Positions 7,101-64,000 of a stretch of 64,000 nucleotides of DNA are shown in pieces (positions within the stretch are counted from its first letter, which is position 1; each line of letters starts with the position of its first letter). The stretch comes from Caecitellus pseudoparvulus. Taxonomy: Eukaryota > Protista > Bigyra: Bicosoecida. The stretch is from assembly GCA_965644315.1 (NCBI GenBank), contig CBFFRQ010000030.1:434001-498000 (forward strand). The letters run 5' to 3'. Below the pieces are notes generated by a model. The model was given only the letters and a program-made list of their open reading frames with translations. It searched no databases and had not been told where the DNA came from. The translations under genes and the position numbers were made by a program.

Positions 7101-8024
7101 GTTCCGCAAGTACCACGCTGACGCACAGCGGCACCACCATGCTGCTGTGAGTGTGCTGAATACGCTGTTTGGGCAGCTGGTGGGGAAGGGTGCGGGTGCC
7201 GCGGCGGCGAGTGTGGGCGGCGGGGGGGGCAGTGCTGCCCACACTCGCAGCTCCCTGCACGCTGCCGTGATGCAGACAGTGACGGCTTTCGCCCGTGAGC
7301 GGCGCCTTGCGATGGAGGCGTACCAGCGGGCGCTGTCGAAGTTCCCCACCAGCCAGCAGCTGCTGCGTCACTACGCATTGTTCCTGCAGCATGTGGTGAA
7401 CGACTACCCTGCGGCTGTGGCGGTGCGTCAGCGTGTGATGGAGTTGGCGGAGCTGGCTGACGAGGCTCGGAGCTTTCGTGATGAGACACAGGCAGCACGC
7501 TCAGTGACTGACATGTCCCGAAGGAGTATGAGTGTGAGTGAACATTCCTCTCGAAGAAACTCAAGAGTAACTTCATTCCCCAAGGAGCAGCTGATATTCC
7601 GGCATCATGAGCTTGCCCAGGCTCATCGCATCATGTGGTGGTTCCGCCTGGCGACGGCAGCAATCATTTTCCTGGCCCTTGCAATGTTCCTCGTATCGCA
7701 CTCTGAGTGGACAACATTTCAGACCTCGTTGAGGACCATGGGGGCAGTTGGCGCGTGCCGAGAAGCCGCTGTCACAAGTCGGTACTACGCTCGTGGCTTG
7801 CAGCTTGCCGCCCTCGCAGGTGACAACGCCACGCTCGCATCCCTCCAGACCGGCATGCTCAAGGAGATGCAGAAGCTCTCCGACATCCATGCAGACCTGT
7901 ACTACAACGGCCAGAGCTTCAGTGCCATTGAGGAGCTGTACTCCGAGCCCAGCGTGCAGGTGCAGGAGCTGTTGCCGGGGAGTGGTGAGGTGCAGAACAG
8001 CAGCTTGGGGCTGTGGGACCTGGG
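1..8024 (+). repeat. Tandem duplication blocks at a constant offset of 6143 nt: 1-1338/6144-7481, ~1476-1511/7619-7654, 1640-1881/7783-8024
   Basis: Direct comparison shows near-identical nucleotide blocks separated by strongly diverged segments of equal length. Confidence 0.9.
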
Positions 8025-10311
8025 GAACAACCTCGCAGTAGCAGGGATCCAAGTCAGCAGCATGGATGCCCGCAAGTTGAAAGACGCCCCTGCCCAGCCA
8101 GCCTGGTGGTTCATCTTCGCCAACGCGTGTGCAGTTTTGTATGTTCAGTTTGGCTACGCAGCCAGTTTGTTTGAAGAGCACGACAGAGATGCTGCGTGGG
8201 AAGCTGGCATTGCCCAGGGCGCCATTCAAGCGGCTTCTACACTGATAACAGTCACAGTGGCTGTCTGGGTGCTGCACCCGATCATCCTACTAGTTCATAC
8301 CTCGCGAGAAAGTGTGTCGGCAGTGCTGCAGGCCATCCCACTTGATGCCGTTGTGGCCTTGCAGCAGCGGTATAAGCGCCTTGCAGTTCTGTACCACAGA
8401 CTGGGCCACCGAGCGGTGGATGATGCTGATGCCCTTCATGATCAGCTGCAGCGTGTTCTTGTGCACCATCTGTCGCCCGTGGCTTCTTCCAGAAGCACCC
8501 AGCATGTTCACGGTCCGCCAGCTCGACGCGTACAATCTGAGTGGCCATCAGACTCGCGGCATGCGCTTCCAGTCCTTCTTCATAGCCCACACAGGCTTCC
8601 TGGCTTTCAGACAGGCGGGGGCCACACCGTCATTCGGGTCTCGCCGGCCTACAAAGAGAGTCAGGCCGCCACTTCAGCAGGGCTCAGTCCGCAATCACAA
8701 CCTTCCGATGAGGGCAGCCCGATTGACCAGGTCGTCCAAGTTGCATGGAGTGCAGAATCGTCTACTTCTCCAGAGAAAGACGGCATGGCGAGGCCACCCT
8801 CTCCTGTCATGCTCCCAACAGTGCGCCAGGGTGAAGCGCCTGCGCACAGCATGGGCTCAGTGGACATGATGGCCTCGCCTTCGCTTGACGTTGATGAGGC
8901 TTTTGGAAGCGACTCGCTGGGAGCTGTTGAGGAAGGAGAGGGGGGCGAGATAAAGTCCTCTGGTGATCGTGCGCAGGAGCAAGAAAGTGCGCCGGTGTCG
9001 CCGGGCAACCAAGCCTCATCAGCGCCAGCTCAGGCAGGTGCAGACCGCCTGCACATCAGGGTGCCCATGCCCACCCGTGCTGGTGACCCTCTTCAAGAGG
9101 CCCCTCTGTATGTCGAGCACCCTCGGCAAGCGTTGCAACCCTCGCCTGGCATCGCTGATGGCGGGCTTGCGTTCAAGGCCAGAGCTCAGAGCCTGCCTTT
9201 CACGTCCCAGCAGCTCCATCGCATTGTTGGGAGCACAGATTTGTCATCACGATCGGGCCAAGAGCGCGGCCGGCCGCCGACTTGGCAGCACCTTCCTCGG
9301 CGTGGCCGTGTGGTGCCCGAGAGCCAAGAGAAGTCAGCGAGGGGCGCATGGAACCCGACGTCATGCGCGCCTGTGGCCAAGCAGACACGAGACCAGCGCA
9401 ACGCGCTGGCCCTCGCATCGAGACGAGTTCGAAGAGCACGGCACTGCCAATGGTGGCGAGAGCTGCGGGTGCTGCTGCGGGACACTTCTGCAAAGCGTTT
9501 GCTTGTGGTGACGATGCTGTGCCTTGGGCTGCTTGCCGCGGTGCACCATGCGACCTTTTTAGTGACGTTAGAGATATTTACGCGGGGGAGCTCAAGCTCG
9601 GCAGAGCTTAACCAAGCAGCCAACCGCATTGCGCTGGCCCACGAAACCCTTGCCACATCCAGGGAGTTGATGATTGGCAGGTCCACACGTGTGGCCAAAC
9701 TCAACGTGGCGAATCACCTGCAGCAAGCGGCTGACCAGCTTCGGCGCGTCCATGATGGCTTGAGGTTTGGAGATGAGGACTTGAATCTACCAGGGTCTTC
9801 GAAGCGGTATGGGGCTCGAGAGGAACTCCTGTACGGGCGGTCCATGCAGGCTCACACGGCAAATACCTCAGAAGTTGCTGGCCTGGCTAGCCTGGGAGTT
9901 CACGCAGTCTTGAGCCGCTTCCTCGCCGATGCTGCCTCCATCCATGCCCACTACAGTGCAGATGCGACCCCGGCCCTTGGGCTGAACCTCACTGCCATCG
10001 AAGCTGACCCAGTGTTCGCTGAGATGCAGGCACTGGAGTCTGGACCACTGCACAAGGGGCTGTATGCCGTGCTGCACTCTTACAAAGAGGAGGGCCGTGA
10101 CACTGTGAGGTCCTTGGCCAGTAGCAGTGCGCTCATCTTCAGCGTGAACACCCTCATCGTCATCGGGCTGTACTTGTTGCTGCGCTGGCTTGCGGTGGAC
10201 CAGGTGAAGCTGGAGCTGCTGAGCCGCGAGCACGTGCTCATGCTGCTCCCGCACCACCTCATCAGGCATTCGCCTGGGCTGGAAACGTTCCTGGGACCCC
10301 TGGCAAGCTGA
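4889..10311 (+). CDS. TmcB/TmcC-like multi-pass membrane protein, paralog B (spliced 5' end)
   Basis: Main exon covers ORF 5872..10311. Phase-compatible upstream exons: 4889-4922 (MDFGPSSVKHH), 5243-5400, ~5519-5630 (VLQLMTDK...LLIVDFLQQIG), ~5696-5767, and ~5843 onward (YIIPTQDAAVFNAG). The start codon is tentative. Confidence 0.7.
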
Positions 10312-10573: not shown

Positions 10574-13500
10574 ATGGCCTTGGAAGCAGCCGAGCAGGTG
10601 GACCTGCGTTTCTTCCAGCGAGGAAATAAGGTCTGGGTTCGGAATCCGTACAAACCAGGCGATGAGCGGTGTGTTGCAGCTCGATGCGGTGGCGGCTCCG
10701 AGATCGTGCAAGGTGCACCACGCCGCCGCGACGCTCCCACACAGGTACCGCGCTGAGTGGATGCCCGCGAAGCTGTCAGGCAAGCCTGTGCGTATGCAAT
10801 TGGGGTCTGCAGTTAGTGCCGCCCAGTGCACCCCGTTTCCACTTCGCACTTGCGCAGCTGTGGGTGCCAGGTGAAGTCTTGACGGTGTCGGCTGGCGATG
10901 GTGCCCCAGAGATCAGCGTGCAGACTTCGCTGCCCCCACGAGTACCCCTGATTGTACCAGCTAGAGAAGTTCTCCCCATGAACCAGGTGCGTGTCCTCAC
11001 AGCGCCCCCAGGCGGCGCGGAGATGCTCCTGGTGCACTGCTGGGTGGGGTGAATTTCCGCACACGCACCATCATTGAGTTCGAGGCCTCTGCAAGGCCCA
11101 TGGGCTGGTGCAGACGGGTCAGGCTTGCCAAACCTACTCTCTGCTTTTGGTGCTCTGCGCATCCCCCGCCCCTGGTGGCGGGTAACGCCGTGCCCGACTT
11201 GCGCCCACCAAAGCGGCAAGCGCTGCAAGCTGCAACCTGGCACCGCCAGTCGTCCGCACACGCACACGCCCCGCCTGCCCCCATGACCCGCGCAGATCAC
11301 GGGACTGGATCAGATGTCCGAGTTTTCCCACCTGCACGACGCGGCAGTGCTGTACAATGTTCAGAGGCGGTACTTGGAGGAGCGCCCGTACACGCAGGCT
11401 GGCTCCCTGTTGCTTGCTGTGAACCCACACCGCGTCATCACAGACCGGGATGGCATTTCCATCTACGACCCGATCTACATGCACCGTTACCGCATGCGCA
11501 TGCCAGAGAAGTTCAAGGCCGCCATGCCCACTGCGGGCAAGGCCGCCGTCACGCTGCCCCCGCACATCTACGATACGGTGGAGGGCGCCATTGACTCCCT
11601 GCGCTCCAACGTGCTGCCTCAGGCCCTGGTGCTGTCTGGCGAAAGCGGCTCGGGCAAGAGTGAAACTGCCAAGTTGGTGTCGGCCTACCTCATGCACTCC
11701 TCTGTCGCGTCGCGCGTGGCGCTGGAGCAGCGGCAGGAGGCTGCTGAGGCAGCTGCTCGCGGGGAGGAGGTGCGGGGCGCAGCTGAGAGCGAAGCGGCCT
11801 CCCGTGGCATGCTGTCGCCGACGCGCACGACATCAGCACGCCTGCGCCTGCGCCAGGGCGACCTGGTCGCAGCGCGACGCGATGCAGCGTCTCGCCGCGG
11901 CGCCATCGGCGGTCCTCGCAACGCGCCCTACCACAAGGACCTGGGACCCGTCGAGCTGCGAGCTCTGGCGGGCGAGGCGGTGATTGAGGCGTTTTCATCG
12001 GCAGGCACCCATGCCAATGCTAACGCCAGCCGAGCTATTCGTGTCACGAAGTACCACTTCCACCCGAACGGCACCCTGGTGGCTGCCGCTCACACAGTGT
12101 TCCTCACTGATGTGGCCCGCGTTACACAGGTGCCTTTCGTGCCTGGAGCGGACTGGCGGGCAGGCGTGTCGGGTGGAGGCTTCAAGGGCTTCGCACCGCA
12201 CACAAACTTCCACGTCTTCTACTACCTCTTGGCGGGTGCCCCCACCGACCTCAGGTCGTCCCTGCGGTTTGGGAACGGCGACGCATCAGCGGGGGTGCAG
12301 GTGGCCGATGCGCCCATCGGGTACCGCTACCTGCGCCCCGTGGCGCCAGACGATGACGCCAACGCCCAGCAGCGGACGCTGGCTTCAGGCGGTGCTTCGC
12401 AGACTGACATTGACCGCATCACGGGGCAGGGTGTGGCGACGCTGTCCAGTGATCACGCCTTTGGCTTTACGGCGCTTGTGCACCACCTGTCCAAGGCCGG
12501 CATCGAGGGCGAGGCTCAGAGCAACCTGTGGCACGTCCTGGCTGGCATTCTGCACCTGGGCAACATCACCTTCACCCTGGATGCCGGGGAAGGCGGAGGC
12601 GTGACGGCGAACATTCAGGCTGTGGAGCGCGCCGCGTCTGTGCTGGGCGTCACGCGGGAGGAGCTGATGGCCGAGGTGACCAGTCGGCCCACAGGTGCGG
12701 CAGGCACCTCCCGCGTCCGCATCAAGACCATCGCGGAAGCCATGGCCAACGTGGACAACACCGCCCGCCGCCTGTACACGCGCCTGTTCAACTGGCTTGT
12801 CGCTCAAATCAACGCTGCGGCTATTGGCTCGGCAGGGGAGGCCTGGCAGGTGGCAGCTGAGGCAGTGCCGGAGCTGGACCTGGCGGCGGGCGGGCTGGGA
12901 GCGGCCATGCTGGCGCCAGAGGCAGGCGCACCGAAGGAGCCCCTGTACGTGGCTGTGTACGACACGCCGGGCTTTGAGATGCTGCCCAAGGGCGGCGTGG
13001 AGGGCGGCTCCCACCATGGGCTGGCGGAGCTGTTCGGGAACCACATCGCAGAGCGCCTGCACGCCGAGTTCGTGGACCGCATGTTCAAGGCGGAGCAGCG
13101 CGTGTACGAGTCGGAGCGAATTGACGGGCGCCACATCCAGTACAGCGAGAACAAGGACGTGCTGGCGTGCCTGGAGAACCCCCGCACTGGGCTGCTGATG
13201 ATGCTGGAGGAGCAGAGCGCTCACCGGCGCGCCACGGACGCCTCCCTGCTGCACAAGCTGCACACGATGCAAAAGCGCAACCCCGCGTATGCAAAGCCGC
13301 CCAACCGCGTGGTGGCGCAGACATTTTTCGCCCTGCGCCACACGGCTGCCGCGGTCACGTACAGCATCGACGGCACGCTGAATGTGAACCGAGTGCAGGT
13401 GCAGGACAGCATTTGCGCGGCACTTGCCTCGTCCTCCTTCCGCCCCCTGGTGGCCCTGCTTGGCTCCACCTCCTCCGTCACGGCACTGCTGGGGAAGGAG

Positions 13501-16500
13501 GGGGGCGAGGGTGCCGCCGCCCCCAGCGCTGAAGGCGGACCAAGCGCATCCCCTGGCTCCGTCGCGTCGCCTGCTCGGGCAGGTGGCCGGCGTGGCGGCG
13601 CCCTGGGCGCCGCTGCCGTGGACAAGTTCTGGGGCAGCGCCTTCTCCCAGACGCTGGATACGCTGCTGGCTGCTCTGCGTGGCTGTGAGGTGCACTTTGT
13701 CTTCTGCCTGCGCCCCAACGTGCTCAGCGCGCCGAACTATGTCGAGCCGGCGCTGCTGCACCACCAGATGGTGTACGGCAACGTCATGCACGCGGTGGCG
13801 CTGCGGCACTCTGGCTTCTCCTACCGCACCATCTTCGAAGACTTCTACGCCCGCTTCATCATCATCGCCCAGCAAAGCGGAAACCTGGTGTACCCGCCGC
13901 CGCCCCATGCCAACATGCGCGCTCTGTGCAAGGAGTTGCTGCAGCAGCTGGTGACACACCCAGTGTTCGAGGCGGTGGATGTCGCTCGTTCGGCGCAGCT
14001 GGGCGTGACGAAGATCTTCCTGCGCAAGCACATGATCGACACGCTGAATGCGCTGCGAGAGGTGCGCATGAAGGCGATGGACCGCATGGCCACCAAGGCG
14101 CAGGCCATGTGGAAGGGCGCACACACGCGCCTGCGCCTGCGGCAGATGTGGGCGGGCATGGAGGAGCTGCAGGTGACGTGGCGGGCACACATGCACCGGG
14201 CAGCGTGGCTGCGGCGGCTGTGGGCTGCACGGCGCATCCAGCACGCGGTGCGTGGCTGGCGCGCCACGCGCCGCTGGGACGTCATTCGTTCAAACATCAA
14301 GAAGCTGCAGGGGTGGTACAAGAGCGGTGCCACCCGGCGGCGCTTCAAACGCACGCAGAACAGCCTGCGCCTGCTGCACACCCTGGCCCGGGGGTACATC
14401 GTGCGCCAGCATGTCCTGGCCATGTTGGAGAACGTCGTGAAGCTGCAGACGGTGGCCCGGGACTTCCTCGTGCGCAATGCCAACTACCACCGCAAGGCTC
14501 GCGCTGCAGCCCGCATCCAGGCCGCGTGGCGAGGCTTCACCTGGCGGTGGAAGGCGGAAGACGTGCTGGAGTACTTGGCCCTGCGCCGCATGGATCGGCA
14601 CATGGACAAGGCTGCCGCCAAGCTGCAGGCATTCTGGCGGGGCCTCCTTGTGTGGCGCCGGTTCAACCAGATCCGCAACGCCGCCACCACCATCCAGCGG
14701 TACTGGAGGTCGCGCCGGGAACGGGACATCTTCCTGCGCCTGCAGTCCGCCGTGCGAGCCGCCCAGGCCTTCGCTCGAGCGTACCTGCAGCACCGGCGGC
14801 AGCAGCGGGAGGCCAACTTGCGTGGGCTGGCGGATGAGCTGTGGCGCCTGCAGGCTCTGCGGGAGCGGGAGGCACAGGACCTCGTGGAAGCGCATGGCGT
14901 GGAAGCCGTGTGCGGCGTCAGCTCCATGCGGGCGCTGGTGCAGCAAGGCACGCGCGGCACACACATCCTGGGGTCGCTGCTGGATGTGGACTGTGCCCTG
15001 GACGTGTCGGACATTTACTCGACGGGATTTGTCCGCATGTACGACGAGCTGGTGACGAGTCTGACGGATGCGGGGCACCGCGTGGCAGGCATTGCAGTGG
15101 GCGGCACCCACGTCATGGTGCTGACAGACCACGGCGTCGTGTACTCATGGGGGTTTGCAGACAGGGGGCAGTGTGGGCACAGCGACTGGGAGCCGAGCTG
15201 GTCTCCCCGCCGTGTGGAGACACTGGCCACTGGCGCCCAGCCTGAGTATGTCTTGCAGGCGCTGGAAGTGGGGTACCGAGCGGCCAAGGCGGCGGCTGTG
15301 CGGTCCAAGGCTCGCATCTCGGAGGGAGGGGACGCCGCCTTTGAGTCTGTGCGCACAGATGGGGGCGGCAAGGCGGGGGACCGCCCCCCACGTGCCCTGG
15401 CGTCCGCCTCAGCGTACGCTGGTCTGCTGGGCAGCAGCAGCGTGACGACGCCGCTGGGCTTGCTGGGTGTGTCTGGCGGCGTCCCCGAGCCGGGCATGTC
15501 CACCCCCTTCACCCTGGGCGGCGTCAAGCGCGCCCTGAAGAATGGCATCGCCATCCGACAGATCGCAGCAGGCGAGGAGCACTCACTGGCCCTGTCCACG
15601 TCAGGCGCCGTCTTTGCCTGGGGTGAGGGGCGCCGGGGCCAGCTGGGTCTGGGCGGCAAGGTGCCTGTGAACACGCCCACTCCCGTCGCTGCCCTCGCCC
15701 GCAAGGTGTCCTCCATCACCGCAGGCTCCAACCACTCCGCCGCCCTGCTGTCCACCGGCACCGTCATGGTGTGGGGCGCGGGGCCCGCGCTGGGCATCTG
15801 GTCCCAGCCAGGGGTGGAGGGGGCTGCCGCCCGGCGCGGCAGCACGGGGCGGGGCAGCCCTGGGCGGGGCGGGGAGGCGTCTGGCCCGGATCTGACCTTC
15901 ATGCGGCCGTGGCTGGCTGCGCCGCCCACCAGCTCGGCAGAGTGGGCTGAGCTGCTCGCCACGCTGCCCGACATGCCCGTGCCGCAACCCGTGCGGGGCC
16001 TGCGCTTCGACCGGGACCGTGTGCGGCACTTGGAAGCAGGCGGCTCTGTGACGGCGGCCACCACTGCCGAGGGCCGTGTGTACACCTGGGGTGTGTCCAA
16101 GGTGGGTGCGCTGGGACACGGGGACACGGACCCACGCCTTGTCCCGACGCTGGTGCGGGCACTGCTGCCCCCAGCGCCCAGCCGCAGCGCCAGCCCGCCC
16201 AAGGCACCGGTGGAAACAGGCGCCAGCATCAGCGAAGGCAAGGCGGACCCGGCTGGCACACAGGATGCACTGCCATCCACACCTGGCAGGAAGGGTGCAG
16301 ATGGCGAGGGGGGGCGAGGCGGCAGCCCCGGCAGTCCCAGCCGTGCTAAGGCGGCCCACTTCCGCATCAACATGACGGCTGTGGGGGGCTCGCACTGCGT
16401 GGCGGTGGCAGCCACAGGCAAGGTGTACGTGTGGGGCGCCAACGGCAGCGGGCAGCTGGGCCTGGGCGACACGGCCCCTCAGCTGCTGCCGACACCCCTG

Positions 16501-19500
16501 ACCACGCTGCGTCTGCGGCGTGTGCTGCAGGCCGTCGCAGGCACGCGCAGCACGCACGTGTTGACAGACTTGAATGAGGTGCTGGCGTGGGGTGCAGCTG
16601 GCAGCCTGCGCAGCCCCATCGCAAGCACAGCGTGGAGTGAGGATGCAGTGGAGGATGCCGAGGAGGGCCCAGGCACGCCTCGCCGGGACCCCAAGCGCAA
16701 GAACACGGGGGACGTCGTGAACACGGTGTTCCGGAGCCTGGTCCCGCTGGAGGTGCCCTTCCACGACGTCCCCAGCCGCGTCCCCAAGCGCCTCCTCGTC
16801 GGCCACAGCCGCTCCATGGGCGTCGTGGGCATCGTGTACAGCCAGAGCCCGCTGTCTGATGGCCAGGCGCACTCTGTGCTGTTTGGCCTGCACAAGTCCT
16901 CCGCCACACCGGCAGACCCTCTGCAGCTGTCCCTGACGGCGGCGCAGGCCTCCGCTGCCCACGAGGCGGAGCTCATCCACTCCGCTGCGACCGGCGCCGT
17001 GGACGCTGCAGAGCTGCTCGCGACAGCGTCTCGCTCCACGCGGCGCCTCAGGCAGGCTGCGCGCCTGGTAGCGGAGGCGGAGAGCCGCAGCTCCTCCCCT
17101 GGCAAGGACGACGCGTCGGTGGCCACGGCTGGCAAGAGCAGTGTGGGCGGCGGCGGGCTGACGTACGGCGAGACCAGCATGATCACACCGGGCCTGGTGA
17201 GCATGGACGCCCGTCAAGACCTGCTGGCTGCCATCGAGGCAGAGGAGCTGGAGCGCCTTCAGGTCGTGGAGGCGCGCGCACTGGGCAGGCCCCACGCTGC
17301 CACGGACCAGCACCCCGAGCTGGTGCCCTCAAGCGGAGACGTCCTGCGGAACGGGCACATCCGATCGGTGCTGGACGACTCTGTGGGCCCGCCTGTCTCG
17401 GCACACCAACTGCGGTCATTGCTGCCTCACATGAGTCCCCGAGTGGCGGCCGCTCTGTTGGGCGGCCTCACTCCTGCCCGGGTGGGAAAGATCACAAATC
17501 CCCAGCTGTATGTGCTGGTGATGCGGCTGAAGTCCCACTTGGACACCGTCGGCGCTGCGCCCGCCACTGGCAAGTTGCCTGTGGCAGCAGGCAGGGCCTC
17601 TATCGTCGGGTGGGGTGTCTCCTCCACCCCTGGCGTGTCGGTCGTGTCGGGGCAGGCCGACAACGGCAAGCCCAAGCTCGCCATCGTCGAGCGCAAGCGG
17701 CGCAAGTACCGCTCCATCCTGGCTGCGCTGGAGCACACGTCCGCGACGTCCAAGGCGTCGGCCCAGGTCGCTGAGCGAGCCAGCGCCAAGGGCGTCGACC
17801 CTCGAGCCGCGACGTACTCCGCCAACGCCAGGCGCCGCGCCCAGCTGCGCAGCAAGGCCCCTGGCGTGGACCCGGATGCCGGCTCCTCCAAGACCACCCT
17901 GGCCGCCTTCTCCCACGCCCGGTCTGGCCCCGCCTTGGGCCCACGCAGCAGCCCTGGCACCATGACCCCCGAGGACATCCGGCGGTCCCAGGAGGCAGGC
18001 TGGACAGCCAACTTCGCCGCTTCAGCTGCGCGCAAGGGGGCCAGGGACGGCATCGCCTCACCAGGGCAGCTGCATTCCCGCGGCACGGGGACGTATGTGG
18101 GTGCCCGTGGCGGCGCCCCAGCCAGCCCCAACCGCCCCGTGCGAGGCAAGATGCAGAGCGGCGCCGGTTTGCCAGCTGGCCAGGCTGTGGACATGGGCAC
18201 CTCTTCCGGCCGTGCAGGCCTTCGGGCCTTCCACCACGCGAAGGAAGCCGAGTCGGGCGAGCTGACCAATGTCGCCGCAGCTCTGGCTGTCGCGACAGGG
18301 GGTGACTCCCTGGCATCGCAGGAGGCAGGCGCAGCCTCTCCCCGCCGCACGCCGTCCCCTGGCCGGCGCGTCGATCGCTCGCGCCGTGCCGTGCGTGGCT
18401 CCATGCCCAACCTGGCCCCCATGACGTTCAAGGGGTATGAGCTGTCCCCTGAGGGGCCCAGCGACCGGCCCGCCTCCCCCCCTCGGGGGGCGCGCATGGG
18501 CTCCAAGCCCCGCCCAGTGGTGCCAGAGGCAGAGGCAGCGGCTGCCAAGGCAGCTGCGGAAGCGGAAGCTGCCGCCAAGGCTGAGGCGGCAGCGGCAGCG
18601 CGCCTGGCTCGGGAGGGGCGAGTGCAGCGCCGTGCAAGCTCCGGCGCCAGTGCCCTGCACGCGCTGTTCTCTCCCGCCCACCTTGTGGCCACGTCTAACG
18701 ACGACATGGAGTACCAGGACGTCGTCGCGGCGTACCACAAGCGGGCGGCACAGGCTTCAGCCGCCAAGGCCCACGCCGCCACTGCGCGCACCTCCCCCGG
18801 CCGCACGCCCAAGCGCAGCTTCGGCGATGATGCCACCCGCACAGCCCGCAGGTTGGATCGCATGATGGCCATGGGCGCAGGAGGCGGTGCTGCGCCTGCG
18901 CCTGCGGCGGAGGGTGACTCCCCTGGGGCGTCCCCTGCAGCCACATCGCCGGCTGGGGCAGGGGGTGACGCCGGCCACCTCTCCAGTGGCCGCGTCGTGA
19001 ACCGGCGTGCCTCAGAGGTGCGGGCCGCCTTCCCTCGAGCCATGGGGCACCAGTCTGCAGCCGATGCAGCGTCCCCTGGTTCAGGGGGCATGTCTGCACC
19101 CTCCTTCACATCTCCGCCCTCCAAGCCGGACCTGGGCGGCGGTGGCCGCGTGACGGTGCGCGGGTTGGTCAGTGGGACGGCCCCGCCCCAGGGCAAGACG
19201 CCCAGCCCCGGTGCCCAGCGAGGCACGCCAGGGCGCCAGCCACCCCCCACGCCCGACGCTGGGGTGGACGCGCCGTCCTTGGAGCCACGCCCCGCTGGCC
19301 CGGCAGCAGAGGCGGCGGCGGCTGCCCGAGCTGCGACGTCCCGAGCCTTGGCTGAGGCCGATGCCCAGGCAGGCGAGAGCCCCTCCAGCTCTGCGCCAGC
19401 CGCACCAGGCAAGGCACAGGCCAGTGTGGAGGACATCAAGGGCGCTGCCGCTGCGGAGGCGGCTGCGTTGTGGGAGGCGGGTGAGTCCAAGGGACCTGCC

Positions 19501-19548
19501 TCGCCCCTTCCCAGCCTGAACCAGCTGCTGGCGGGGCAGCGGCAGTGA
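10574..19548 (+). CDS. Unconventional myosin: SH3-like N-terminus, motor domain, multiple IQ motifs, RCC1 repeats, low-complexity tail
   Basis: Exons 10574-10668, 10745-10787, 10858-10986, 11296-19548, all GT-AG and phase-compatible. Motifs LLLAVNPH, PPHIY, P-loop GESGSGKSE, NFHVFYYLLAG, DTPGFE, FVFCLRPN, GVTKIFLR; IQ motifs (IQAAWRG, LQAFWRG, IQRYWRS); RCC1 repeats (IAAGEEHSLAL, VYVWGANGSGQLGLGD). Confidence 0.92.
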
Positions 19549-51471: not shown

Positions 51472-52350
51472 TTAGAAAGTGACGCTGCGGAAGGCGTCCT
51501 TCACGAAGTAGCCGTAGATGGTGCCGTCCTGCTCGTACTTGACGTACATGAAGTTGCCGCAGAAGGTGTCGCCGGCGTACTTGTCGCCCTCCAGCTCGCC
51601 CTCCTCGATCTCCTTGATGTACAGCTCAGGGCCGAAGAACTGCAGCTCCTTGAAGTTGGCCAGGATCCACTTCTGGGCGGCCTTGAAGCGCTTGCCGGCG
51701 GCCTGGAACTCCTCCTTGGAGCCGAAGGCCTTGTGGTACTTGGCCATCTTCACGAAGCCGTCCTGGAAGAAGGCCCAGTAGTCCTCCTTGAAGGCCTTCT
51801 TCTTGGCGAACTCGAACTCGTTCTCGATGTCAGGGAACATCCAGAACTGGTCCAGCTTCCACTCCTCAGCCTCATCAGCCTCCTCGTCACCCCCGGTGTC
51901 CACGGCGCCAGACTCGGACTTGTTCTGCAGGGGAGGGGGGCGAGGGGGCGCCGTGCTTGGCCTGCACCAGCGCCACACTGCAGCGCAGGCACTCTGCCGG
52001 CGTGTGCCGTGCCAGACAGCCCCGCAACGCCACGCACCACGATGGGGACACGGATCAGGCCAGTCTCGTTGCTGTGTAAGGGAGGCAGTGGCAGGCGGCG
52101 CCGTGCAGGAGCAGGGGCAGCAACGAGCACAGGTTGGGCGGAGAAACGGGTTCACCCGAACACGTCCCCGGCGCAAGCGGCCTGCACGCACCCCTCCTCA
52201 TCGACGACGTCCTCCCAAGGCTTGGCGTCGGAGAACATCTCCGTGCCAGTGACAATGCACTTGAACACCTGCAACGGGGGCGTGGGCGGCGTCGTGTGGC
52301 CCTGCGAACGCCCGCTGGCATGGCGCGGCGTGGCAACGCCGCACCTTCAT
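51472..52350 (-). CDS. TCTP: Translationally controlled tumour protein (TCTP) homolog, divergent; 4 exons
   Basis: MK|VFKCIVTGTEMFSDAKP, acidic loop, AQKWILANFKELQFF, YGYFVKDAFRSVTF. Strong codon bias suggests high expression. Confidence 0.8.
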
Positions 52351-52582
52351 GATGGATGCTGTGGTGGGAGCGGGTCGGCACAAACTGAGTGGCAACACAC
52401 GGTGCAGGTTGGAATGCGAGCAGAGCAAAAGTGTCGAAGGTAGGCAATTGCCGTCGCTGGCCTGAGCGTGCTCCCTCAGGCATGGGGCCTGCACCGTGCA
52501 CACGCTATGCTCCAGCGGCCGCAGACACGCCAACCCCAGCTGCAGCCAGTGCATTGCCCCTGAGCCAAGTGGCCCGACACGC

Positions 52583-53560
52583 CTACTGCCTGCTGCGGCG
52601 TGTGCGCATGCGCACGCGCCCCTTGCCTCGCACAATGCCCAGCGCGCCGTAGCGGCTGCCGTGTTTGGAGGCGGCGCGGCGCATCTTGTCGTACACGCCG
52701 TAGTCGTTCTCAGACACCAGCTCTGCATCACGGCGCGTCTCAAAGGGCGCTTGGTCTGTGACCAGGGACACCAGCAGGTTGGCGCGGGCCTGTGCGCGGC
52801 CGCCCGGCTTGCTGCCCAATGCCACCTTTTCCCACGCACGCTGGTTCACCAGCACCACCTTCCAGCCCTTGGAGCGGATGAGGTCGTACTTGGCCTGCAC
52901 GTCTGGCTTCAGCACGTGTGTGCCGGGGAAGTAGTCGTCTGCCGCCACGACGTCGATGACCAGGTACATGTGCTTCAGCGCAGCGAAGGCGTGGACGCCC
53001 TCCGTGATGAGCTCCTGCTTGTTCACAGGCCATCCTAGACGACCAAGCGTGCGCAGGACGCCAATGCGAGCTGATCGCATGGGGTCAAAGCTGGCGTGGG
53101 GCGCGAGCATGGGGGCGAGTGCGGGGGTGCTCAGGCGCACGCGCTGCAGTGCTGGCACAGAGACAGCCAAGGGTACGCACCGAGCTGCAAACCGGACGGC
53201 TTGCCGGATGGTCAGTGCGTCTGCTTTGCGGGCAGCCTTCTTCTTCCAGCTGGGCACGCCTGCCCGCGAGCGGTGCCGCACCTGCAATGGACGGGGACAG
53301 GTCCGTTCACAGTCAGCGGGGGTGCGGAATATGCACCGCCTCTGCATCAGAACGGCAGCACGCACCGGCATGCCGTGCACGCTGGGGGCAGCAGCTGCTT
53401 GGGTTGAGGGGGTGCCTACCACTCTGTCCAGGCGGGGCATGGCAGATGCGCCAGTCCACGCGCTGATGCCACGGGAGAGGGCTGGTGCCGGCACGGCCAA
53501 GGGCACAGCGCCACGCAGCAGCGCCTGCCTGGCGCCACGCGCCACGACGTTCAGGGCCAT
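52583..53560 (-). CDS. Probable mitochondrial RAP-domain-like RNA-binding protein
   Basis: Arg/Ala-rich presequence MALNVVARGARQALLRG; C-terminal KYDLIRSKGWKVVLVNQRAWEKV resembles the RAP consensus. Probably contains in-frame introns. Confidence 0.55.
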   Translation of the reverse strand: MALNVVARGARQALLRGAVPLAVPAPALSRGISAWTGASAMPRLDRVVGTPSTQAAAAPSVHGMPVRAAVLMQRRCIFRTPADCERTCPRPLQVRHRSRAGVPSWKKKAARKADALTIRQAVRFAARCVPLAVSVPALQRVRLSTPALAPMLAPHASFDPMRSARIGVLRTLGRLGWPVNKQELITEGVHAFAALKHMYLVIDVVAADDYFPGTHVLKPDVQAKYDLIRSKGWKVVLVNQRAWEKVALGSKPGGRAQARANLLVSLVTDQAPFETRRDAELVSENDYGVYDKMRRAASKHGSRYGALGIVRGKGRVRMRTRRSRQ

Positions 53561-53899
53561 GGCGGTGCAGGGTAGGGGCGGGTGGCGTCTCACAACACAC
53601 GCAGGACAAACAAGGATGCGTTGGGGGATGTTGATTTGCGCTACCGTGCCCGTTTCTCAAGGCTGCTCGCTGTGCTTGCGGCACCACCGCCACGCAAACA
53701 CAGTTGTTGTGGGGCAGGTCCTGGAATGGTGGCCCAGTCTCACCGCCCGAACATTTCAATACCCCCCGTCCTCACGACTACCCAGGCATCCACTCCGACG
53801 GAGGTGCCTCCTGACGCTCTCTGCGCTGCCAGGGGGGTTCGTCTCGTTCACCAGCCACCAGCAGTGTGCTGTGACAGTGCCGCTGCCAGCCGCCGACCG

Positions 53900-56800
53900 A
53901 TGGCGGGCATGTCTGAAACCAAGCTGTCTGCCACAGGGGGCGTTGTGTCTGTGTATGACCTGCACTCCCTGGTCAAGGATGTCTCTCGCCAGCCTGTGAA
54001 GGTGGCGCAAGGTGCGTGCCGGTGCAGTGTCGCCAGCGACCCGGCCATCCGACTTTGGCCTTGCGTGTGCCAGCACGGGTGGCTGCCTGCACGCGCCTGG
54101 GCTGTGCCAGTCGTGCACGCCGACCATGTTGGCCCTTCACCCCTCGGGGCTCCTGTGTCGCGCGATGTGTGCCGACTGTCAGCGTCTCGAGTTCTCACCA
54201 GCGGCACCGGAGCGTTTCTCACCTGGCTGGGCGACCTTTCGGGTTGAGCGGCCGCTGTCGCTTGCCAGCCGCCCTCGCATGCACGCCTCCACTGCCTTGT
54301 GCCGCCTACATGTGGTGTGACATGCCGGGCACCCATGTGTGCTTGTGGGCGGTCCGCTGCGCCCTGCTGCGGACGCCCGCCGCCGCGTGTGTGGCGTTTG
54401 AAGTGCCAGCAGGCAGCGTCAGTCATTGGCGCAGCTCAGCGCGGCCACCATGCACCTGCTCAGCCTTGTCACTGCCCCACGCCGCCCCATGCACAGAACC
54501 AGACAAGATCGTGGGAGCGGCGGCGCCGAGCCGTCCCCGCGACCAAGCCTTGCTGCTAACGGAAGGCACGCTGTACCGTGTGTGGGCCGGCATGGTGCAG
54601 GCTGTGCAGAGCAAGGTGAGCGCGCGTGCCCGCACTGCCCGGCCACGGCACGCCCCTGCACATGCTGCCTCCTCCATACTCTCCACAGCTGTCCCCTGGG
54701 GCCGGCACACAGGCCGCTACCATGACCGCTGCGGGCGGGGCCGCAGCCATCGCCCGTGGCGCCCGGTCAGTGCAGGTGCCTGGTCTGGGGGATTTCTTCT
54801 TCCGAGAGTTCCGCCACGGCATCCGCCTGCCCCAGTTCGCGCTGGCCGACACCTTCGCCTCCGCCCACGGACTGCGCTTCGTGCCCCACGCGCCAGCAGG
54901 CGGACTGGGTGCGCCGGGCGCCACGTACGCCGCCCTGACCCCCGCCTCCCAGCGCGTCAAGGTGGGCGCCAAGGTGACGGGGGAGGACGTCGCCGCCCTC
55001 GCCAACTCCTTGACAGACAGGGAGCTGGAACACTTCCTGGCCGCCTTCGGGGGTGTTCCAGGAACACAGTCCTGGACGCCGCCCTCGCCCACCGCTGGGG
55101 CGGGCGGGTCCACCACCGCAGCAGGCCTCTCTCGCCGGGGGTCCAGCGCTCTGTACTCCCCCTCCAGCGGCAAGCGCGGCAGCGGCAGCAGCAACCGAGT
55201 TTCCCGCGGCGTCGCCGCTGCCGCCATGCATGCGCTGTGGGAGGCTGCAGGGCAGGCAGCCACCTTGGCGGGCACGTCCCCCTCTGGGCCTGACGCGCTG
55301 CACCTGCCCTTTGGCTCGCTAGGCAGTCTGCAGGGTCGCGCCAGCGCCGTGACGTTTGAGTTCGCTCACGGAGAGGATGTCCCCCGCGGCACCATCGCGC
55401 GGCACTTCGACGCAGCTGCTCAGCGCGGGCAGCACCTTTTCACGGCAGGCGGTGGGGGGAACTTCAGCTTGCTGCCGGCCGACCCCGCCAAGGCGCTGGC
55501 AGACCACCTGGTCGCAGACGCCGACGTCGTCAACAAGCTCCGTGTGGAGGCGCAAGAAGCAGATATTGTTGCTGAGGTACGCCTGCCAGCGGACCTGGGC
55601 GGAGGTGCCACCTCGGCACGTGCGACGTGGGGCCGCATGGCGACCGACCCGACCGCTCATGTGACGCCCCCCAGTGAGGCCTTGGCAGTGCGGGAGGCCG
55701 CCCTTCAGGCTGCCTCAGCCCAGTCCAGCGCCGTGCGGCGGGATGTGCAGTCCGCCCGTGTGCCGCACAGGGGGCGGGGTCTTCTGGAGCCGGGGGCCGG
55801 CAGGGTGGCTGAGCTGGGTGCCACAGTGGGTGCCCCTGAGAGCAAGGGCGCCCGCCCACCCCTGCACGCCAAGCAGGCTTGGGAGAGCCAGCCTGTCGCC
55901 TCATCCCCCTCACACCTGTCCCTGCACCTGACTAGTCTGGGCCTGGGGCAGGGTGCAGCAGGGGGGGACCTCGTCCCACACCCCCCCCCTCCCCAGGGCC
56001 CCCAGGCGTGGGAGGGCACCCCTGGCACGGACGCTGTGTCCTCTGCCGTCTTCGGCAGTGCGCCCTCTGACCGGGGCTCTGGGCTGCTGGAGGCGGTGGG
56101 GACGCTGGAGGAGACGGCGGGAAGCATGGCCCCCTCCAGCGCCGACCAAGCCGACGTGGACGACGCCACAGCGGACATGGTGGCTGACGGGCGCTACGCT
56201 GGCCTGCGCCTGACGGTGGGGGACTCGCCTCGTCTGCAGGCGGCAGCGGCCAACGCGTACCCGCCCCTGCTGAACACCTTCTCACGCACCCGTGCCGCGC
56301 CCCTGCACGAGCACGACATCCCCGGCGTGATCAAGGCGGGCAGTGGCGCCTCGGCACGGGGCACCACGTCCGGCTCCACTCCCCACGCGCCTGCCGCCAC
56401 CCAAGCCTCGGCTCGCCTGCGAGGCAGTCAGTCCCTGCGCAAGGCTGCCAGCGTGCGTGAGCACCGGAAGCAGGAAGGCGCCGCAACTGCCGCCCAGAGC
56501 GCACAGGAGTTCGGCGCCAACACCTCCCTCACCCACGCCCTGGGCAGTCGGTACACGCCCTCTGCTGCCAGCCTCTCCCTCACCCGCTCCAAACAGGAGG
56601 GCGGGGCCCGGGTCCTGCAGGCTGTCCTGCCTGGGACAGGCGCCGAGACGGATGTCTCGGAGGCCCTCACAGCAGGCCGCTCGGACCGCTCTGGCTCCGC
56701 CAGCGTCACGCCCGGGCGCAATCGCTTCGCCTTGACGCAGCGGTCTCTGGACACGTCGCGCCAGGCGGCACGAGCGTCTGCTCGCAGCATGGTGCCAGGT

Positions 56801-59800
56801 GGGCACGCCGCCCCCGCCTTGACCCTGGACAGCTCTGCTTCGGACCACGCCCTTGCGGCGGACGCCACCTCCCCCCTTGAGGCGGGGGCACTGGATGAGG
56901 AAGTGGAGGCGGCCGCTGCCGCGAAAGCGTCTGCCCTGGGTGTCTTCGACTCCGACGCCTTCGGGGCCGCCACCAAGAAGTCCATCCTGTCCTCTGACCC
57001 CGCCACGGCGGCAGAGGCCACTGCTCGCATCACAGCCGCTCGTGTCGCGGCGCGGGCGGGGCCCTCCTACCTTGCCTCCCTCTCAGGCCGGTCCAAGACC
57101 AGCAAGGGCGCGGGGGAGGGCATCCCCGTCGGCTCGGCGTCCTCCGCCGCCCTGCACCTGGGCTCCACCTCCAGCCTGCTGTCAGTGGCGGATGGTGTGC
57201 CGTCTGGTGTCCGGGCCCTGGGCGGCTCAGCCTCCACTGCCTCCGTGTACAGCCTGCCTGGCTTCGTGCGAGTGGACGGCTCCACACACGCGCTGCCCAT
57301 TGCCGCCGACCCCAGCCTCGCCCATGCTGCTGGTACTGCCTCCTCTGCCACAGGCTTCACGGCCATGTCCCCTGCCTACCGCGCTGCTGTGCGGCGGTAC
57401 CTGGGGTACCTGGACGGGCCCGGGTCACAGGGCATCGACACGCAGAGCGGTGCCATCGCACCCCTGCGCAAGAGCTGGCTGGATGCCGCCATGACGCTGC
57501 TGCCGCCGGCGCCCACCAACCCCCAGCAGGTGCAAGCTGCCAACGCCATGTTGGCGGGGCAGTTGGCCGAGCTGGTGGGTCGCTACGAGCGGTCGCAGCG
57601 ACAGGCCCTGTTGAACTACGTTCTGCGCTCCCCTGGCGACCGCATGCGCCTGGGCGTGCCGCTCATCCCAGAGGGCTACCGCATCCGGGAGTGGGGGTGG
57701 GGCTCCACGCCCTTCCCCCTGGCCTCCTGGTACGGCCACGTGGTGGGGCAGGCGGATACGCTGCCCTTCGGTACATCCCCACGGACATCCCCGCTGCCCC
57801 TGCCCCCACGTGTGCCGCCCTCCTGGCACGCCCACGTCATTGGCGCCGCGGAAAGCGTCGTGCCACAGCTGTACCGCATCTGCCCAGCCACACGCCAAGT
57901 CATGGACAGCTGGCTGGGGTACTACGCGCGCTTGCCACATGCACTGCTGGTGCAGCTGCCGCAGCTGGCGGGCTGGGCAGCGCCAGGTGACGAGGTGGCC
58001 CAGGGCGGTGACACGCCCTTCAGCCCGGTGCGGGGACCACGTGGCGCTATCCTGCCGCCCGTGCGCACACTGCCGGGCCCGCAGTTCCTCTCGTCCTTCG
58101 AGGAGATCCAGCACAAGCAAGCTGACTTCATCCGAGAGGGCCTGGTGGGTGTTTGGTTGCCAGAGGCCCACGACACCATCAGGCGGTACTTTCACACCCT
58201 GCACACGCCTCAGGGCGGCGGTGCCAGCGCCCGATCTGGAGGCGGCATGCTGCCGCCTCTCGCTGGCAGCCGGCTGGGTGCTGAGGCAGAGGGGGAAGGC
58301 GCCTTCGGTGGCGGCTCCAAGGCCGATGCGCTAGATGCCTCCCGGTACGTGCAAGGCTTCTTTGACGGTGTGCAGGCGTCCTTCCTGCCCCTGCACCTGT
58401 TCGAGCCTGCACGCCTCCTGCGTGTGGGGCAGTGGGTTCTGGGGCAGCAGCTGCGCTCCCTAACGTCCCGCTCCCTGCAGGCCCTCGTCGCGTACTTCCT
58501 GCGCTTCGCCAAGCGCCGCCAACGCCGCGCGCTGAACTGCATCGTCGCCCTGGCCCGCCAACGCATGGGCCTGCTGGTGCGAGAGGCGGCAGCGGCCGAG
58601 GCCAAGGCTGCCGCGGCGCGTGCCGCTTCCCAGGCAGCAGCAGCAGCTGCCGCTGCGGCGCAGCAGGAGCGAGAGCGCCAGCGTGCCGAGTATGACGAGC
58701 TGAAGGCTGCAGCGGCTGCGCGAGGGCGGGGCCCAGCCACCCACCGTGGCGTGCTTAGCCAAGCTGAGTGGGACCGCCTTGCCGCTGAGCACGCGCAGAA
58801 AGTTGCCGCCGAGGCGTTTGACGGCGCTGGCAGCGATGGGGGCAGCCTGGCGGCCAGTGACAGCGCGTCGTTGGAGGAGGAAGGCGTCGACGGACATGCG
58901 CCTGCCGCTCGGCACCGCGATGGCACGGCCGAGCACAAGTTCGACTTTGGGGATGAGGAGAGCGATGAGGAGGAGGGTGTCGGCGTGGGGGGGCGGGTCG
59001 GTGAAGGTGACGAGGCAGACTTCCCCACTGACTTCCTGGACGACGATGAGCACGTCGCAGCGTACTGCGACATTGCCCGTCTGCGGTTCATGCTGGGGGA
59101 GGACTTCGCAGAGGGCGTGTTGCGGGTGCTGCAGGGGGACACGCCCCAGTCTGCCTCTGCCGAGCACAAGTCTGCCGCCCCCACCTCTCCGCAAGGCACG
59201 CCAGTGAAGCTGGCGGGGGACGTGAACGACATCATCGAAGTGCACGATGCCTATGCGAGCGACCCAGCCATCACTGCGGGGGTCGTGCCCCCCGTTGGCT
59301 GCATCGGCTTTGACCTGGCCGATCCGATCGTGCAGCAAGCTGCGCGACTGGAAGCGGCTGCCGCCAGGGCTGGCGAAGGTGGTCCCGCCGCTCTGCTCTC
59401 GCCCCGCCGCCGCTCCAGCGCCTACAGCAACCTGGGCGCCTCCGAGGACACGCCAGAGGTGGAGGCCAGTGTTGCCCCCACGGCAGAGCTGTTCCCAGCC
59501 TTCGTCCTGCGACTGTCCTCTCAGGAGGCGGAGGAGGCCCGCCCACCGCCCAAGGGCGAAGACAAGGCTGAGTATGGGGACGACCCCATCTTGGGATTCG
59601 TGCAGGCGCAGGGGGAGCGGCAGCCGCTGGACAGCCAGGACCCCGCCCCCAGCATGGCTGAGGAAGAGGGCATGGCAGAGACGCTGGCAGGGATGCGAGC
59701 CGAGAACACGCGGGTGTTCTGCCTCACCCCCTCCCCTGAGGAAGTGGAGGCCACCGTGCTGCGGGTGTTTGACGACACGGTGCGTGCGACGCACCACATC

Positions 59801-62800
59801 CCGAACCTGCTGTACCGGTACGGCACATTCTACGAGACCTTGGGCATTGGCCTGGAGGCAGAGGCCGGCCCAGGCCCAAGCCATGCTTCTGATGCAGCTA
59901 CTGCGGGAGGGGCCAGTGATTCCCGCTGGCCCTCCGAAGCCAAGCCCACCATCGTCCGGCGGTGGCGCAACGACGAGACAGAGCTGCACTCTGTGAGGGT
60001 GGCTCTGGACGCTGCCTCCCGCGGCACCAGCAGCGCCCCCACGACGGAGACGTACGCCGCCCTGCAGCAGGGCGGCGTGGTGGTGGACACACACCGCTAC
60101 CTGCGCAGTGTGCGCCCTGACGAGCCGGCGGTGCGTGCTGCGAAGCGCATCGTGCAGACAGTGCTGCGCCAGAGCATGGCCGACGCCCAGAAGCTGCTGG
60201 AGCTGTACACACCCTTTGAGTTCCTGCTGTCTGAGTCCGGGCGCCTGGGGCGGTTCCTGGACACAGCGCCGTCCCTGCCTGAGTGCCAGAAGGTCATTGA
60301 GCAGTATGAGAAGACGCAGACGGACATCCTTGCAGTGACACAGGCCGCCGATGCAGTGGCTAAGGTGCTGGCCGACGCACAAGCACACGGGGATGCGCCA
60401 GCTGAACTGGACTCGAGTGATCTGGACGCCGCTGCGGCAGTGCTGGGCGGCGCCGCGGCGGGCAACGCGGACATCGACCCTGCCGCCCTGGCGGCAGCGA
60501 CGTCAGCATGGGCACGCGCACGTCAAGCCGGCAAGCCCCTGGTCGACGTCACGTCTGAGGGGTACAAGGGCGTCTTCCGTGTCCCGAACCGGGTGCCGCT
60601 GGACCTCGTCGTTGTGGACTGCACTGCCATGAACGCACTGCTGGTGGGCCGCACCCAGCAGCTCATCGCCCAGGTGTTGGCGTACGTGGAGCGTGTGGCG
60701 AAGAGCAGCCACACGGCCCTCGTCAAGTCTTTCCGTGCCCTGGCTGCGCGCCTACTCACCGTGCCCATGAACAGCGTGGAGCTGGTGAAGGCTGAGCGGC
60801 ACCTGTACCAAGCACAGAAGGTGGACATCCCAGAGCTGGAGAAGCAGTGTGCAGAGGCTCAGGAGCTGCTGCATTTCATGTTCAAACACAGCCACACGGT
60901 GTCGCTGCCGACGCTGCAGCCCAGCCACGAGGTGTCTGTGCTGCGAGAGAAGATCACAGACGAGGTGGTGCCCGCTGCCTCTGCTACCCTGGCGGCGGTG
61001 CGGGCCAAGCGTGAGGCGAGCGTACGCAAGCTTCGTGACAACATGAAGCTGAGCATGAACCGCCTGCAGCGGGACATTGCCCAGTTCAACGACAAGAGCG
61101 ACCCCATGGCCGTGTCTGGGTACTGCGACGAGCTGGAGCAGATGCGAAAGGCACTGGATGCGGCGGCGGTGGAGGCCGCCCGCATCTCCAGCGAGGAGAC
61201 GCGCCTTGGCTTCACCAGCACAGAGTTTGAAGAGATCTCCCGCAACCGGCGGCAGCTCATGCCGTACCACACCCTGTGGCACACAGTGCGCGCCAGCGAA
61301 GCCAAGCTGGCCCGGTGGAAGAAGGGCGGGCCAGTGTTCACCCTGGATGCTGACCAGGTGGCCGCGGCTGTGGACGCCATGTCCAAGACAGGCACCATCC
61401 TGGAGACTGGGTTGGCGACGGAGGCCCCCGAGGCAGCCGAGGCCGCCGGGAAGGTGGTGCGCTCCATGGCCGACTTTAAGCGGCACCTGCCCCTCATCCA
61501 GGCGGTCTGTGCTCACGGCATGCGGGAGCGGCACTGGGAGGCAGTGTCCCGCATCATGGACCCTGTGAAAGTGCGCCCCGACGCGCAGAGCACGCTAACG
61601 CGGCTGCTGGAGATGGACCTGGGGGAGCACGTGGAGGAGATCGCGGTAGTGGCGGAGCAAGCCAAACGCGAGTTCGCCATTGAGGAGAGCCTGGTGCGCA
61701 TGACTGACCAGTTCCACGCCGTGGAGCTGCGGGTGGTGGACCACGCATCCCTGCCTGGCTTGCAGGTGGTGGCTGCGGACTGCATGGAGCTGGCCCGCTC
61801 TGTCGTCTCGGACCAGGGCGTGCGCACAGAGGCACTGCAGTCCGCCCCCTATGCCTCAACGCCGGAGTTGGCTGAGCCCCTGGCAGACCACGCAGACCTG
61901 CTGGTGGATGCCGTGAACATCCTGGCCCTGCTGGCCACGGCGCAGACGGGCATCGTGGAAGCACGCACGCTGTTCTCGCGCTCCTTCCTGGCCAAGCGCA
62001 TGCCGGAGTGCGTGGACCAGTACGAGAATGTGGAGTTCAACTGGAGCCGCGCCATGTCCGGCATCGTGGAGCGCCCGACACTCATCGCGCTGGCGGACAA
62101 CCCCGTCATCAAGGATGAGCTGGAGAAGGTGACGGCCCTGCTGGAGGACTTGCGGCACGCCGGCAGTGCTCTGCTGCAGCGCCTGCGGGAGGCCGTGCCG
62201 CGGTTCTACGGTTTGTCTGACGCCCAGCTCGTGGCCCTGCTGACGACAGAGGCATGGTTCACGCATCCCCCGGCAGGTGCCCTCACCGCCATGTTTCCCG
62301 GGGTGACTGCCTTCTTGACTTCCTCAGTGCCCACGCCGGCGGTGACGGAGGAGGCGCTGGTGGCCGAGTCCCTGGACCCTGCCACCATGACCGTCGCCCG
62401 CCTGGGTGCTGGGCGCAAGAAGGCAGTCCCTGGCATGGACTCTGACTCTGGGTCAGATGTGGAGGGCGGCGCCCAGACTGCGGGGGACCCCTCTGGCCTG
62501 GGCGCCATCGGGCACCACCGCTTCATCGTCGCAGTAGAGGCGGCGGATGGCCGAGTCGTGCCCCTGGTTCGAGCTGTGGACTTGCTGCCGCACGGAGGCG
62601 AGGCGTGCAGCAGCGAGCTGTGGGCCGAGCTGGAGGCGACGCTGCAAGACTCAGTCCTGGCCTTCATCGCAGGCGCTGGGCACCACCACGCCACGGAGGT
62701 GTCCATGCCTCTGGCTGCTTTGGCTGCCACGCCGCAACTCCCCTCACCCAGCGGCGTCCCCGACACTGACACCGCACAGCACACCTTGTGGGACTCGGTG

Positions 62801-64000
62801 CGTCCCCGCCTGGCGCAGTGGGTGTCAGCGTGGCCACTGCAGGCGCAGCTTGTGGCTGTGTCTGCCGAGTGGACCGCCACGGTAGAGGCAGCCATGCTGG
62901 AGACAGCCTTGGCAGCGGCACAGGCTGCTGTGCTGCCCGGCTCCGCAGCGGGCAAGCGCCAGGCGGGCAGCGGCTTTCAGGGCCGCTACCGGGGTGGGCG
63001 CTCGCTTCGCCCTGTGGGAGCCGAGTCAGCCACGGACACGGCGGTGCTGTCTGCCATGTCCGGCTGCACTGCCCCGCTGACCGCCCTTGTCGGCCTGCTG
63101 AACAAGCGCATTTCCTTGCTGAGCTCCATCGCACGGCAGGGGCAGGCCTGGGGCGGGCGGTGCCTCGCCCCTGCCGCCAACTTCACCGAATCGCCCCATG
63201 CACCAGGGCACACGGTCAGTGGCCCTGGCTCGGCACTTGCTACGCGCCTGTCAGTGCTCATTGGCTGGCACGTGCATGCACGTGACGTGACGGCCAGCCT
63301 CGCCGCCGCGTTCAAGACCACTGACTCCACCCTTGCCGTGGCCCTGATGCAGTTCGCGGCAACACAGCAGTTGGAGCTGCCCCTGTCTGCAATGCCGCCT
63401 CAGCTTGCCGCGGCGGCGGCTGCTGCGGCGGAGGAGGGTCGAGACTTGACGCCAGAGGAGGAGGAAGCCATCATCGTGGCGTGGGAGGAGCACGTAGACT
63501 CGGTGGTCACGCAGGTCGCGGCTGCCGGCGCCCAGCACCTGCTGGCGAGCAGTGCCTGGGGGCGCTGCATCAAGATGCACTGGCAGCTGGGGCGCCTGGG
63601 GCAGGACTGCCCCCATGTGCCCCTGCCTGAGGGTCACGAGGAGCAGGAGCAGCAAGGCGCGCCTCAGTACCCGTGGGCGTACTTGGAAGGGGGCTCACAC
63701 CCTCTGCACAGCCTGCTGGCCGAGGGCAGCGGCCACACGGGTCACTCCCGCACTGAGACGTACTTGACTCTCCTGCGCGCGCTGTCCACGGGGGATGCCG
63801 CTGCCATGAGTGTGCTGCAGTCTCGCCTGCACGCTGGGCGCTTCGGCGTGCTGACACAGCGGGCTGGGTCCGACGATGCCCCCGTCTTTTCCGGTGGCGA
63901 CTCAGCGTACAGGCGCACGACCACGGGGTGGTTCTGCAGTGTGGGCGTGGACAAGGCGCTTGACGCCATGGGCGGCCGAGCCACGTCAGGCACGCCCAAG
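53900..64000 (+). CDS. Giant dynein-heavy-chain-like protein with N-terminal CCDC81-type HU-like domains; runs off the window
   Basis: Exons 53900-54011, 54497-54615, then an open frame from 54689 to the window end. The ORF track lists no terminated ORF in this frame, and spot translations are open. Dynein tail/linker motifs: FKRHLPLIQAVCAHGMRERHW (~61475), AKREFAIEESL, PRFYGLSDAQL (~62198), WPLQAQLVAVSAEWT, LIGWHVHARDV (~63260). Confidence 0.8.

Follow-up and report, generated by a model that had tools for sequence, protein, structure and literature searches.

A giant gene that opens near the right end of the stretch of DNA analyzed here (the window: 64,000 nucleotides, G000:C30:434001-498000) encodes a dynein heavy chain that is under purifying selection and whose main ATPase site, AAA1, is catalytically dead as judged from its motifs. 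With a little more confidence than doubt, we read the product as a motor-dead, class-7-derived dynein with an HU-CCDC81 front, which would serve in the flagellum or basal body as a fixed brace or a brake.

Gene model and genomic context

The original prediction held that a frame of about 3,100 codons was open to the edge of the window, and it is: on the plus strand, the frame from 54620 is stop-free for 3,127 codons to the window end at 64000 (ORF scan). Carried past the window along the genome contig, the same frame stays stop-free for 9,404 codons and ends ~18.8 kb beyond the window, the dynein stop lying at window-extended position 82834 (G000:C30:516834). Two small 5' exons joined to this long exon 3 give a predicted protein of 9,458 aa; the predicted introns are GT-AG, with intron 1 in phase 1 and intron 2 in phase 0. 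The N-terminal motifs reported earlier lie where they had been placed, with LYRVW in exon 2 (54499-54615), VQVPGLG at 54770, LPQFAL at 54827, LHLPFGSLG at 55298, and AVTFEF at 55346. The genome of 30.6 Mb has 20 dynein heavy chains, mostly in very long single frames, which marks the host as a flagellated eukaryote poor in introns.

Three further contigs carry parts of the same gene. L029 (metagenome contig Ga0307982_1000300) is an independent ortholog, colinear with the window from exon 1 to AAA2 (57% identity over 3,217 aa); L028 (protein P0001) spans the linker to AAA2; and L030 (protein P0017) runs from the end of AAA4 through the stop codon. The features of the gene are as follows, with positions above 64000 given in window-extended coordinates.

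53900..54011, plus strand: exon 1, with the start codon, 37 codons plus 1 nt, and a phase-1 GT donor as in L029; possibly the first helix of HU1
54497..54615, plus strand: exon 2, carrying the LYRVW helix, which would be the second helix of HU1; phase-0 donor as in L029
54689..64000, plus strand: first third of exon 3, a single stop-free exon running to 82834 (9,381 codons)
54761..54874, plus strand: putative HU-CCDC81 domain 1 (HU1), beta-strand half with the GXG turn (PF14908, E = 0.083, sub-threshold)
54953..55363, plus strand: candidate HU-CCDC81 domain 2 (HU2), split by a ~60-aa Ser/Gly insert (pattern only)
55500..57500, plus strand: Ala/Gly/Ser-rich extension, coding and selected (61% identity, dN 0.41, dS 1.54)
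57533..58648, plus strand: onset of the single-headed dynein tail, weakly matched (window E = 0.009; L029 E = 3.5e-6)
61247..62254, plus strand: dynein linker, DHC_N2 (PF08393, E = 7.7e-48; 72% identity to L029)
63900..64000, plus strand: run-up to AAA1, continuing past the window
64310, plus strand: dead AAA1 P-loop
65666, plus strand: AAA2 Walker A
68570, plus strand: AAA3
71513, plus strand: AAA4
about 72900-73960, plus strand: stalk and microtubule-binding domain (MTBD)
about 74400, plus strand: AAA5 (E = 1e-47), then the C-sequence to the stop at 82834

Several other genes flank the dynein gene. A 336-aa ORF on the minus strand (52583-53593) stands head-to-head with it; this ORF is syntenic and 48% identical in L029 and has no Pfam match at E 0.001. 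Beyond it, spliced exons at 52167-52360 on the minus strand, which by eye we take to be TCTP-like, are also syntenic in L029. Farther upstream on the plus strand are a single 2,744-aa ORF in which RCC1 repeats follow a myosin motor domain (11314-19548) and two long adjoining ORFs, each with a TmcB TPR match (2-4132 and 5872-10311), which are probably tandem paralogs. At the 3' end, a convergent gene that is conserved in L030 (54% identity) has its stop 72 nt away from that of the dynein (G000:C30:516834-516907).

Conservation and selection

Comparison with L029 supports the splice model through conservation of both exons and intron phases. L029 has both small exons, with identical intron phases, and two upstream neighbors in common with the window. 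Exon 1 aligned to its L029 counterpart with a score of 106 (best of 2,000 shuffles, 46) and exon 2 with a score of 107 (best of 2,000 shuffles, 42); intron 1 was not conserved when both loci were compared. An assembly chimera or a chance read-through was ruled out by the colinearity of L029 together with L030, which has two downstream genes in common with the window locus.

Selection was measured against two related contigs. For the 3,950 residues at the N terminus, pairwise dN/dS was about 0.25, and in every region measured it fell between 0.07 and 0.34 at a dS of about 0.8 to 1.6 (stalk dN/dS, 0.19). The gene is under purifying selection. About 3,560 of the 9,381 exon-3 residues align to the canonical dynein profile, and about 5,800 lie outside it. 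We considered whether the inserts could be unspliced introns; protein-level conservation ruled this out for the sampled regions, and the inserts are coding because the sampled Ala/Gly inserts have a dN/dS of about 0.27 to 0.32. In L028 (5740-5810), P0001 stops just past a run of nine G's while dynein-like sequence goes on in another frame, most likely owing to an assembly indel.

Dynein layout and class

The protein has a complete dynein heavy-chain layout. The Pfam matches above cut-off follow the order DHC_N2, AAA_6, AAA_lid, AAA_7, AAA_8, MT, AAA_9, and Dynein_C, and the linker originally proposed (DHC_N2, E = 7.7e-48) is thereby borne out. The AAA6 models gave no Pfam match, and the dimerization domain DHC_N1 (PF08385) is absent from the Pfam matches in the N-terminal 2,000 residues, as expected of a class-7 single-headed dynein. 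The tail match came from a local profile of 32 reference dyneins.

The class of the dynein was assessed from stalk and AAA5 comparisons and a motor tree. The stalk tip matched solved inner-arm chains of Chlamydomonas and human (Chlamydomonas 8glv; DNAH12, DNAH1, DNAH3, and DNAH7) at E values of 1e-40 to 1e-35, and the MTBD carries the axonemal flap-type loop. Stalk and AAA5 had their highest identities to class-7 chains (33 to 37%), with top PDB matches in classes 7/8. In a FastTree motor tree, the sequence sat on a long branch next to the class-7 group, where it paired with a sequence from Tritrichomonas (possibly a long-branch partner). These results suggest that the dynein is likely, though not proven to be, of the class-7 single-headed inner-arm type. 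Stalk and MTBD are also among the best-conserved parts of the protein (76 to 79% identity; MTBD, 79% to L030).

Loss of the AAA1 site

In the window gene, L029, and P0001 alike, the AAA1 motifs have been replaced. Walker A, GPAGTGKTE in the canonical form, reads GATPEAGAAGE in the window gene and is near-identical in the other two (alignment); Walker B has changed from FDEFN to VANAH or VSNAH, sensor I from Asn to Ser, and sensor II is lost. These losses are common to 3/3 orthologous sequences covering AAA1, and what now stands in place of the motifs is conserved in its turn (60%). The arginine-finger motif of AAA2 (SPATVSRCG) has lost its Arg in both sequences that cover it (window and P0001; L029 ends earlier). 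The 19 remaining heavy chains of the genome all have both AAA1 Walker motifs intact, and 38 of 39 reference dyneins have an intact Walker A. Judged by these motifs, AAA1 is catalytically dead and the protein does not qualify as an active motor. A literature search of limited scope, which is weak evidence, turned up no account of a dynein under selection whose AAA1 is naturally dead.

The remaining nucleotide sites are kept in part. AAA2 Walker A is intact in the window gene, L029, and P0001. AAA3, known from the window gene alone, keeps its Lys and two acidic Walker B residues, and the Walker A Thr/Ser has become Arg. AAA4 looks typical in the alignment. Other heavy chains of the genome, with an intact AAA1, occupy oversized frames too (C18:1293778, 7,016 aa; C54:191575, 6,125 aa; C32:371543, 5,953 aa).

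The N-terminal HU-CCDC81 region

The N terminus was profile-searched exon by exon; the L029 piece reads in frame through intron 2. HU-CCDC81_euk_1 was the only Pfam family to match the N terminus in either the window or L029, so that part of the original domain assignment received partial support, covering half of one domain (profile positions 42 to 88 only) at 13 to 17 bits against a cut-off of 26.1 bits. For HU2, the euk_2 profile (PF18289) gave no match at E <= 10 in the window or L029, and there was no PDB match. In L029, ever shorter pieces matched euk_1 at E = 0.25, 0.04, 0.013, and 0.005, the trimming having been picked after the match was seen, which makes the lowest values flattering. 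Exon 2 alone had no Pfam match. The L029 N terminus had no relative among 1.84 billion representative sequences, and word, Atlas, and PDB searches with it found no HU relative. An AlphaFold model of the N terminus from the single sequence was unusable for the fold (pLDDT 34.7). Family searches of the genome with PF14908 and PF18289 revealed no conventional CCDC81 candidate, which divergence or introns could hide.

By itself the HU match would count as noise: elsewhere in the protein, unrelated families score E values of about 0.02 (Nucleos_tra2_C, 0.019). A paralog of HU-CCDC81 with Dynein-VII fused at its C terminus has been described in oomycetes and ciliates, and the GXG turn is a conserved feature of HU-CCDC81 (Burroughs et al. 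2017, PMC5499826). In the window gene, the match is to that very family and falls at the corresponding end of a dynein of that kind, GXG turn included, and the combination argues that the N-terminal region is very probably homologous to HU-CCDC81. The turn reads GLG in HU1 of both orthologs; in candidate HU2 its first Gly is Ser or Ala. The strand half of HU1 is the most conserved part among those tested (86% identity to L029, dN 0.11, dS 1.6, dN/dS about 0.07), and candidate HU2 shows a conserved helix-strand pattern at the expected place, its core being 63% identical in L029 (dN/dS about 0.19). As for the proposal that HU-CCDC81 and dynein form one polypeptide, the single frame and the layout uphold it, and the HU part is probable only.

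Proposed function and alternatives

According to the reading that we favor, the gene would descend from a class-7 single-headed axonemal dynein bearing a divergent N-terminal HU-CCDC81 module. Its lineage would have dismantled AAA1 while keeping the linker, the P-loops of AAA2 to AAA4 (in part), the stalk, and the MTBD. The protein would then be unable to stroke and could work inside the flagellum or basal body as a static element, either a brace or a brake: the stalk tip would grip one microtubule surface, the HU-CCDC81 module or tail would probably hold another, and the long inserts might serve as a scaffold. The narrower form of this proposal, a selectively maintained pseudo-motor whose HU-CCDC81 end and stalk tip cross-link microtubules in the axoneme or root system, we advance tentatively, at somewhat less than an even chance. 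Against such a tether, the HU match spans half of a single domain and stays under its threshold, and Tetrahymena IJ34 and CCDC81B are lumenal, a position that the tail of an external dynein would find hard to mimic. Against a dead motor speaks the retained AAA3 Lys, at a site that no ortholog spans.

The main rival keeps the same protein and gives it no second microtubule contact: it would be a placeholder, regulatory or scaffolding, that fills an inner-arm slot or organizes partners, with HU-CCDC81 binding proteins rather than tubulin. The large share of exon 3 outside the canonical dynein model, with its sampled inserts under selection, fits this, and Burroughs et al. predicted that the clasp binds protein (PMC5499826). 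However, stalk and MTBD rank among the best-conserved parts, and later structures put CCDC81 domains on microtubules (PMC10105768, PMC10705406). We consider the placeholder unlikely. Less probable again is that the N terminus is a lineage-specific extension with a chance likeness to HU-CCDC81, and the protein an orphan dead dynein that has no kinship with the fusion of oomycetes and ciliates. Every HU match does lie under the gathering cut-off, HU2 has no match, the unrelated Nucleos_tra2_C scores comparably elsewhere in the protein, and sequence searches did not connect it with any fusion protein of oomycetes or ciliates. Yet one family tops both orthologs, exactly where the published fusion has it and on the same dynein class, its E value of 0.04 over 24,736 families corresponds to about 2e-6 for one family, and the segment, GXG turn included, is the most conserved of those tested.

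Two further explanations concern the motor and the gene itself. A slow motor or nucleotide-gated clutch, run by AAA3 or AAA2 in place of AAA1, would draw on the intact AAA2 Walker A of three orthologs, on the Lys and two acidic Walker B residues of AAA3, and on the conserved linker; we regard it as quite improbable, given that AAA1 drives the power stroke and its mutation abolishes dynein motility (PMC2533788), that Arg replaces the Walker A Thr/Ser in AAA3, and that AAA6 and the lids have diverged too far for a Pfam match. Least credible of all is a "ghost" dynein, in decay and without a function today, an idea once applied to DNHD1 and one that the long branch, the catalytic loss, and the heavy load of insertions might suggest: the gene runs for 28 kb without a stop or frameshift, every region measured has a low dN/dS (0.07 to 0.34, at a dS of about 0.8 to 1.6), and even the changed AAA1 sequence is conserved. 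Returning to the brace or brake, a non-motor role for a heavy chain becomes directly testable in this gene, where all AAA1 motifs are lost, selection is purifying, and the microtubule grip is intact.

Comparison with known systems

Class-7 inner-arm dyneins (Chlamydomonas DHC6/DHC4, human DNAH3/7/12) provide the best stalk, MTBD, and AAA5 matches. Unlike the window gene, with its dead AAA1 and 9,458 aa, they have an intact AAA1 and about 4,000 to 4,300 aa, and its tree position is near, not firmly inside, their cluster. The aberrant dyneins surveyed by Kollmar (2016, PMC5100056) comprise classes 10 to 17, of which classes 14 to 16 are oomycete specific, and orphans including DNHD1, which has been called a ghost gene. 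Compared by description, the window gene resembles them as a divergent, taxon-restricted, intact gene with insertions; it differs from classes 15/16, which have no recognizable AAA5 region, in that its AAA5 is well kept (E = 1e-47). Whether aberrant dyneins are ghost genes or functional proteins is debated, and this main survey left their ATP sites unanalyzed.

In Tetrahymena, cryo-EM has placed IJ34 and CCDC81B on doublet microtubules, and CCDC81A sits at the ciliary tip (PMC10105768, PMC10522465, PMC10705406). The window protein likewise has a putative CCDC81 domain and a presumed place in the cilium on or near microtubules; the Tetrahymena proteins, in contrast, have no dynein part, and IJ34 and CCDC81B are microtubule inner proteins. 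The location of CCDC81 domains on doublet microtubules, and the loss of the AAA1 catalytic residues needed for transport, weaken the cargo-adaptor reading first given to this gene. At least in this lineage, the dead AAA1 argues against taking an HU-dynein fusion as a sign of cargo transport.

The closest parallel is the HU-CCDC81/Dynein-VII fusion. The gene had been called an undescribed fusion, a claim that does not stand: Burroughs et al. reported the same fusion in 2017 (PMC5499826), and the cargo-binding proposal quoted for CCDC81 arose from that very fusion. The fusion itself is confirmed here in another lineage, with its HU part probable, and the new parts are the dead AAA1 and the doubled size. 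Both have an N-terminal HU-CCDC81 region (putative here) on a class-7-like axonemal chain, with DHC_N2, the AAA ring, and the C-sequence. The fusions are known by a published description that does not give the status of their AAA1 motifs; the window protein is about twice the usual dynein length and has a dead AAA1, and its HU region lies far under the profile cut-off and is split by introns and inserts. Matched by published architecture, the protein probably belongs with the HU-CCDC81/Dynein-VII fusions.
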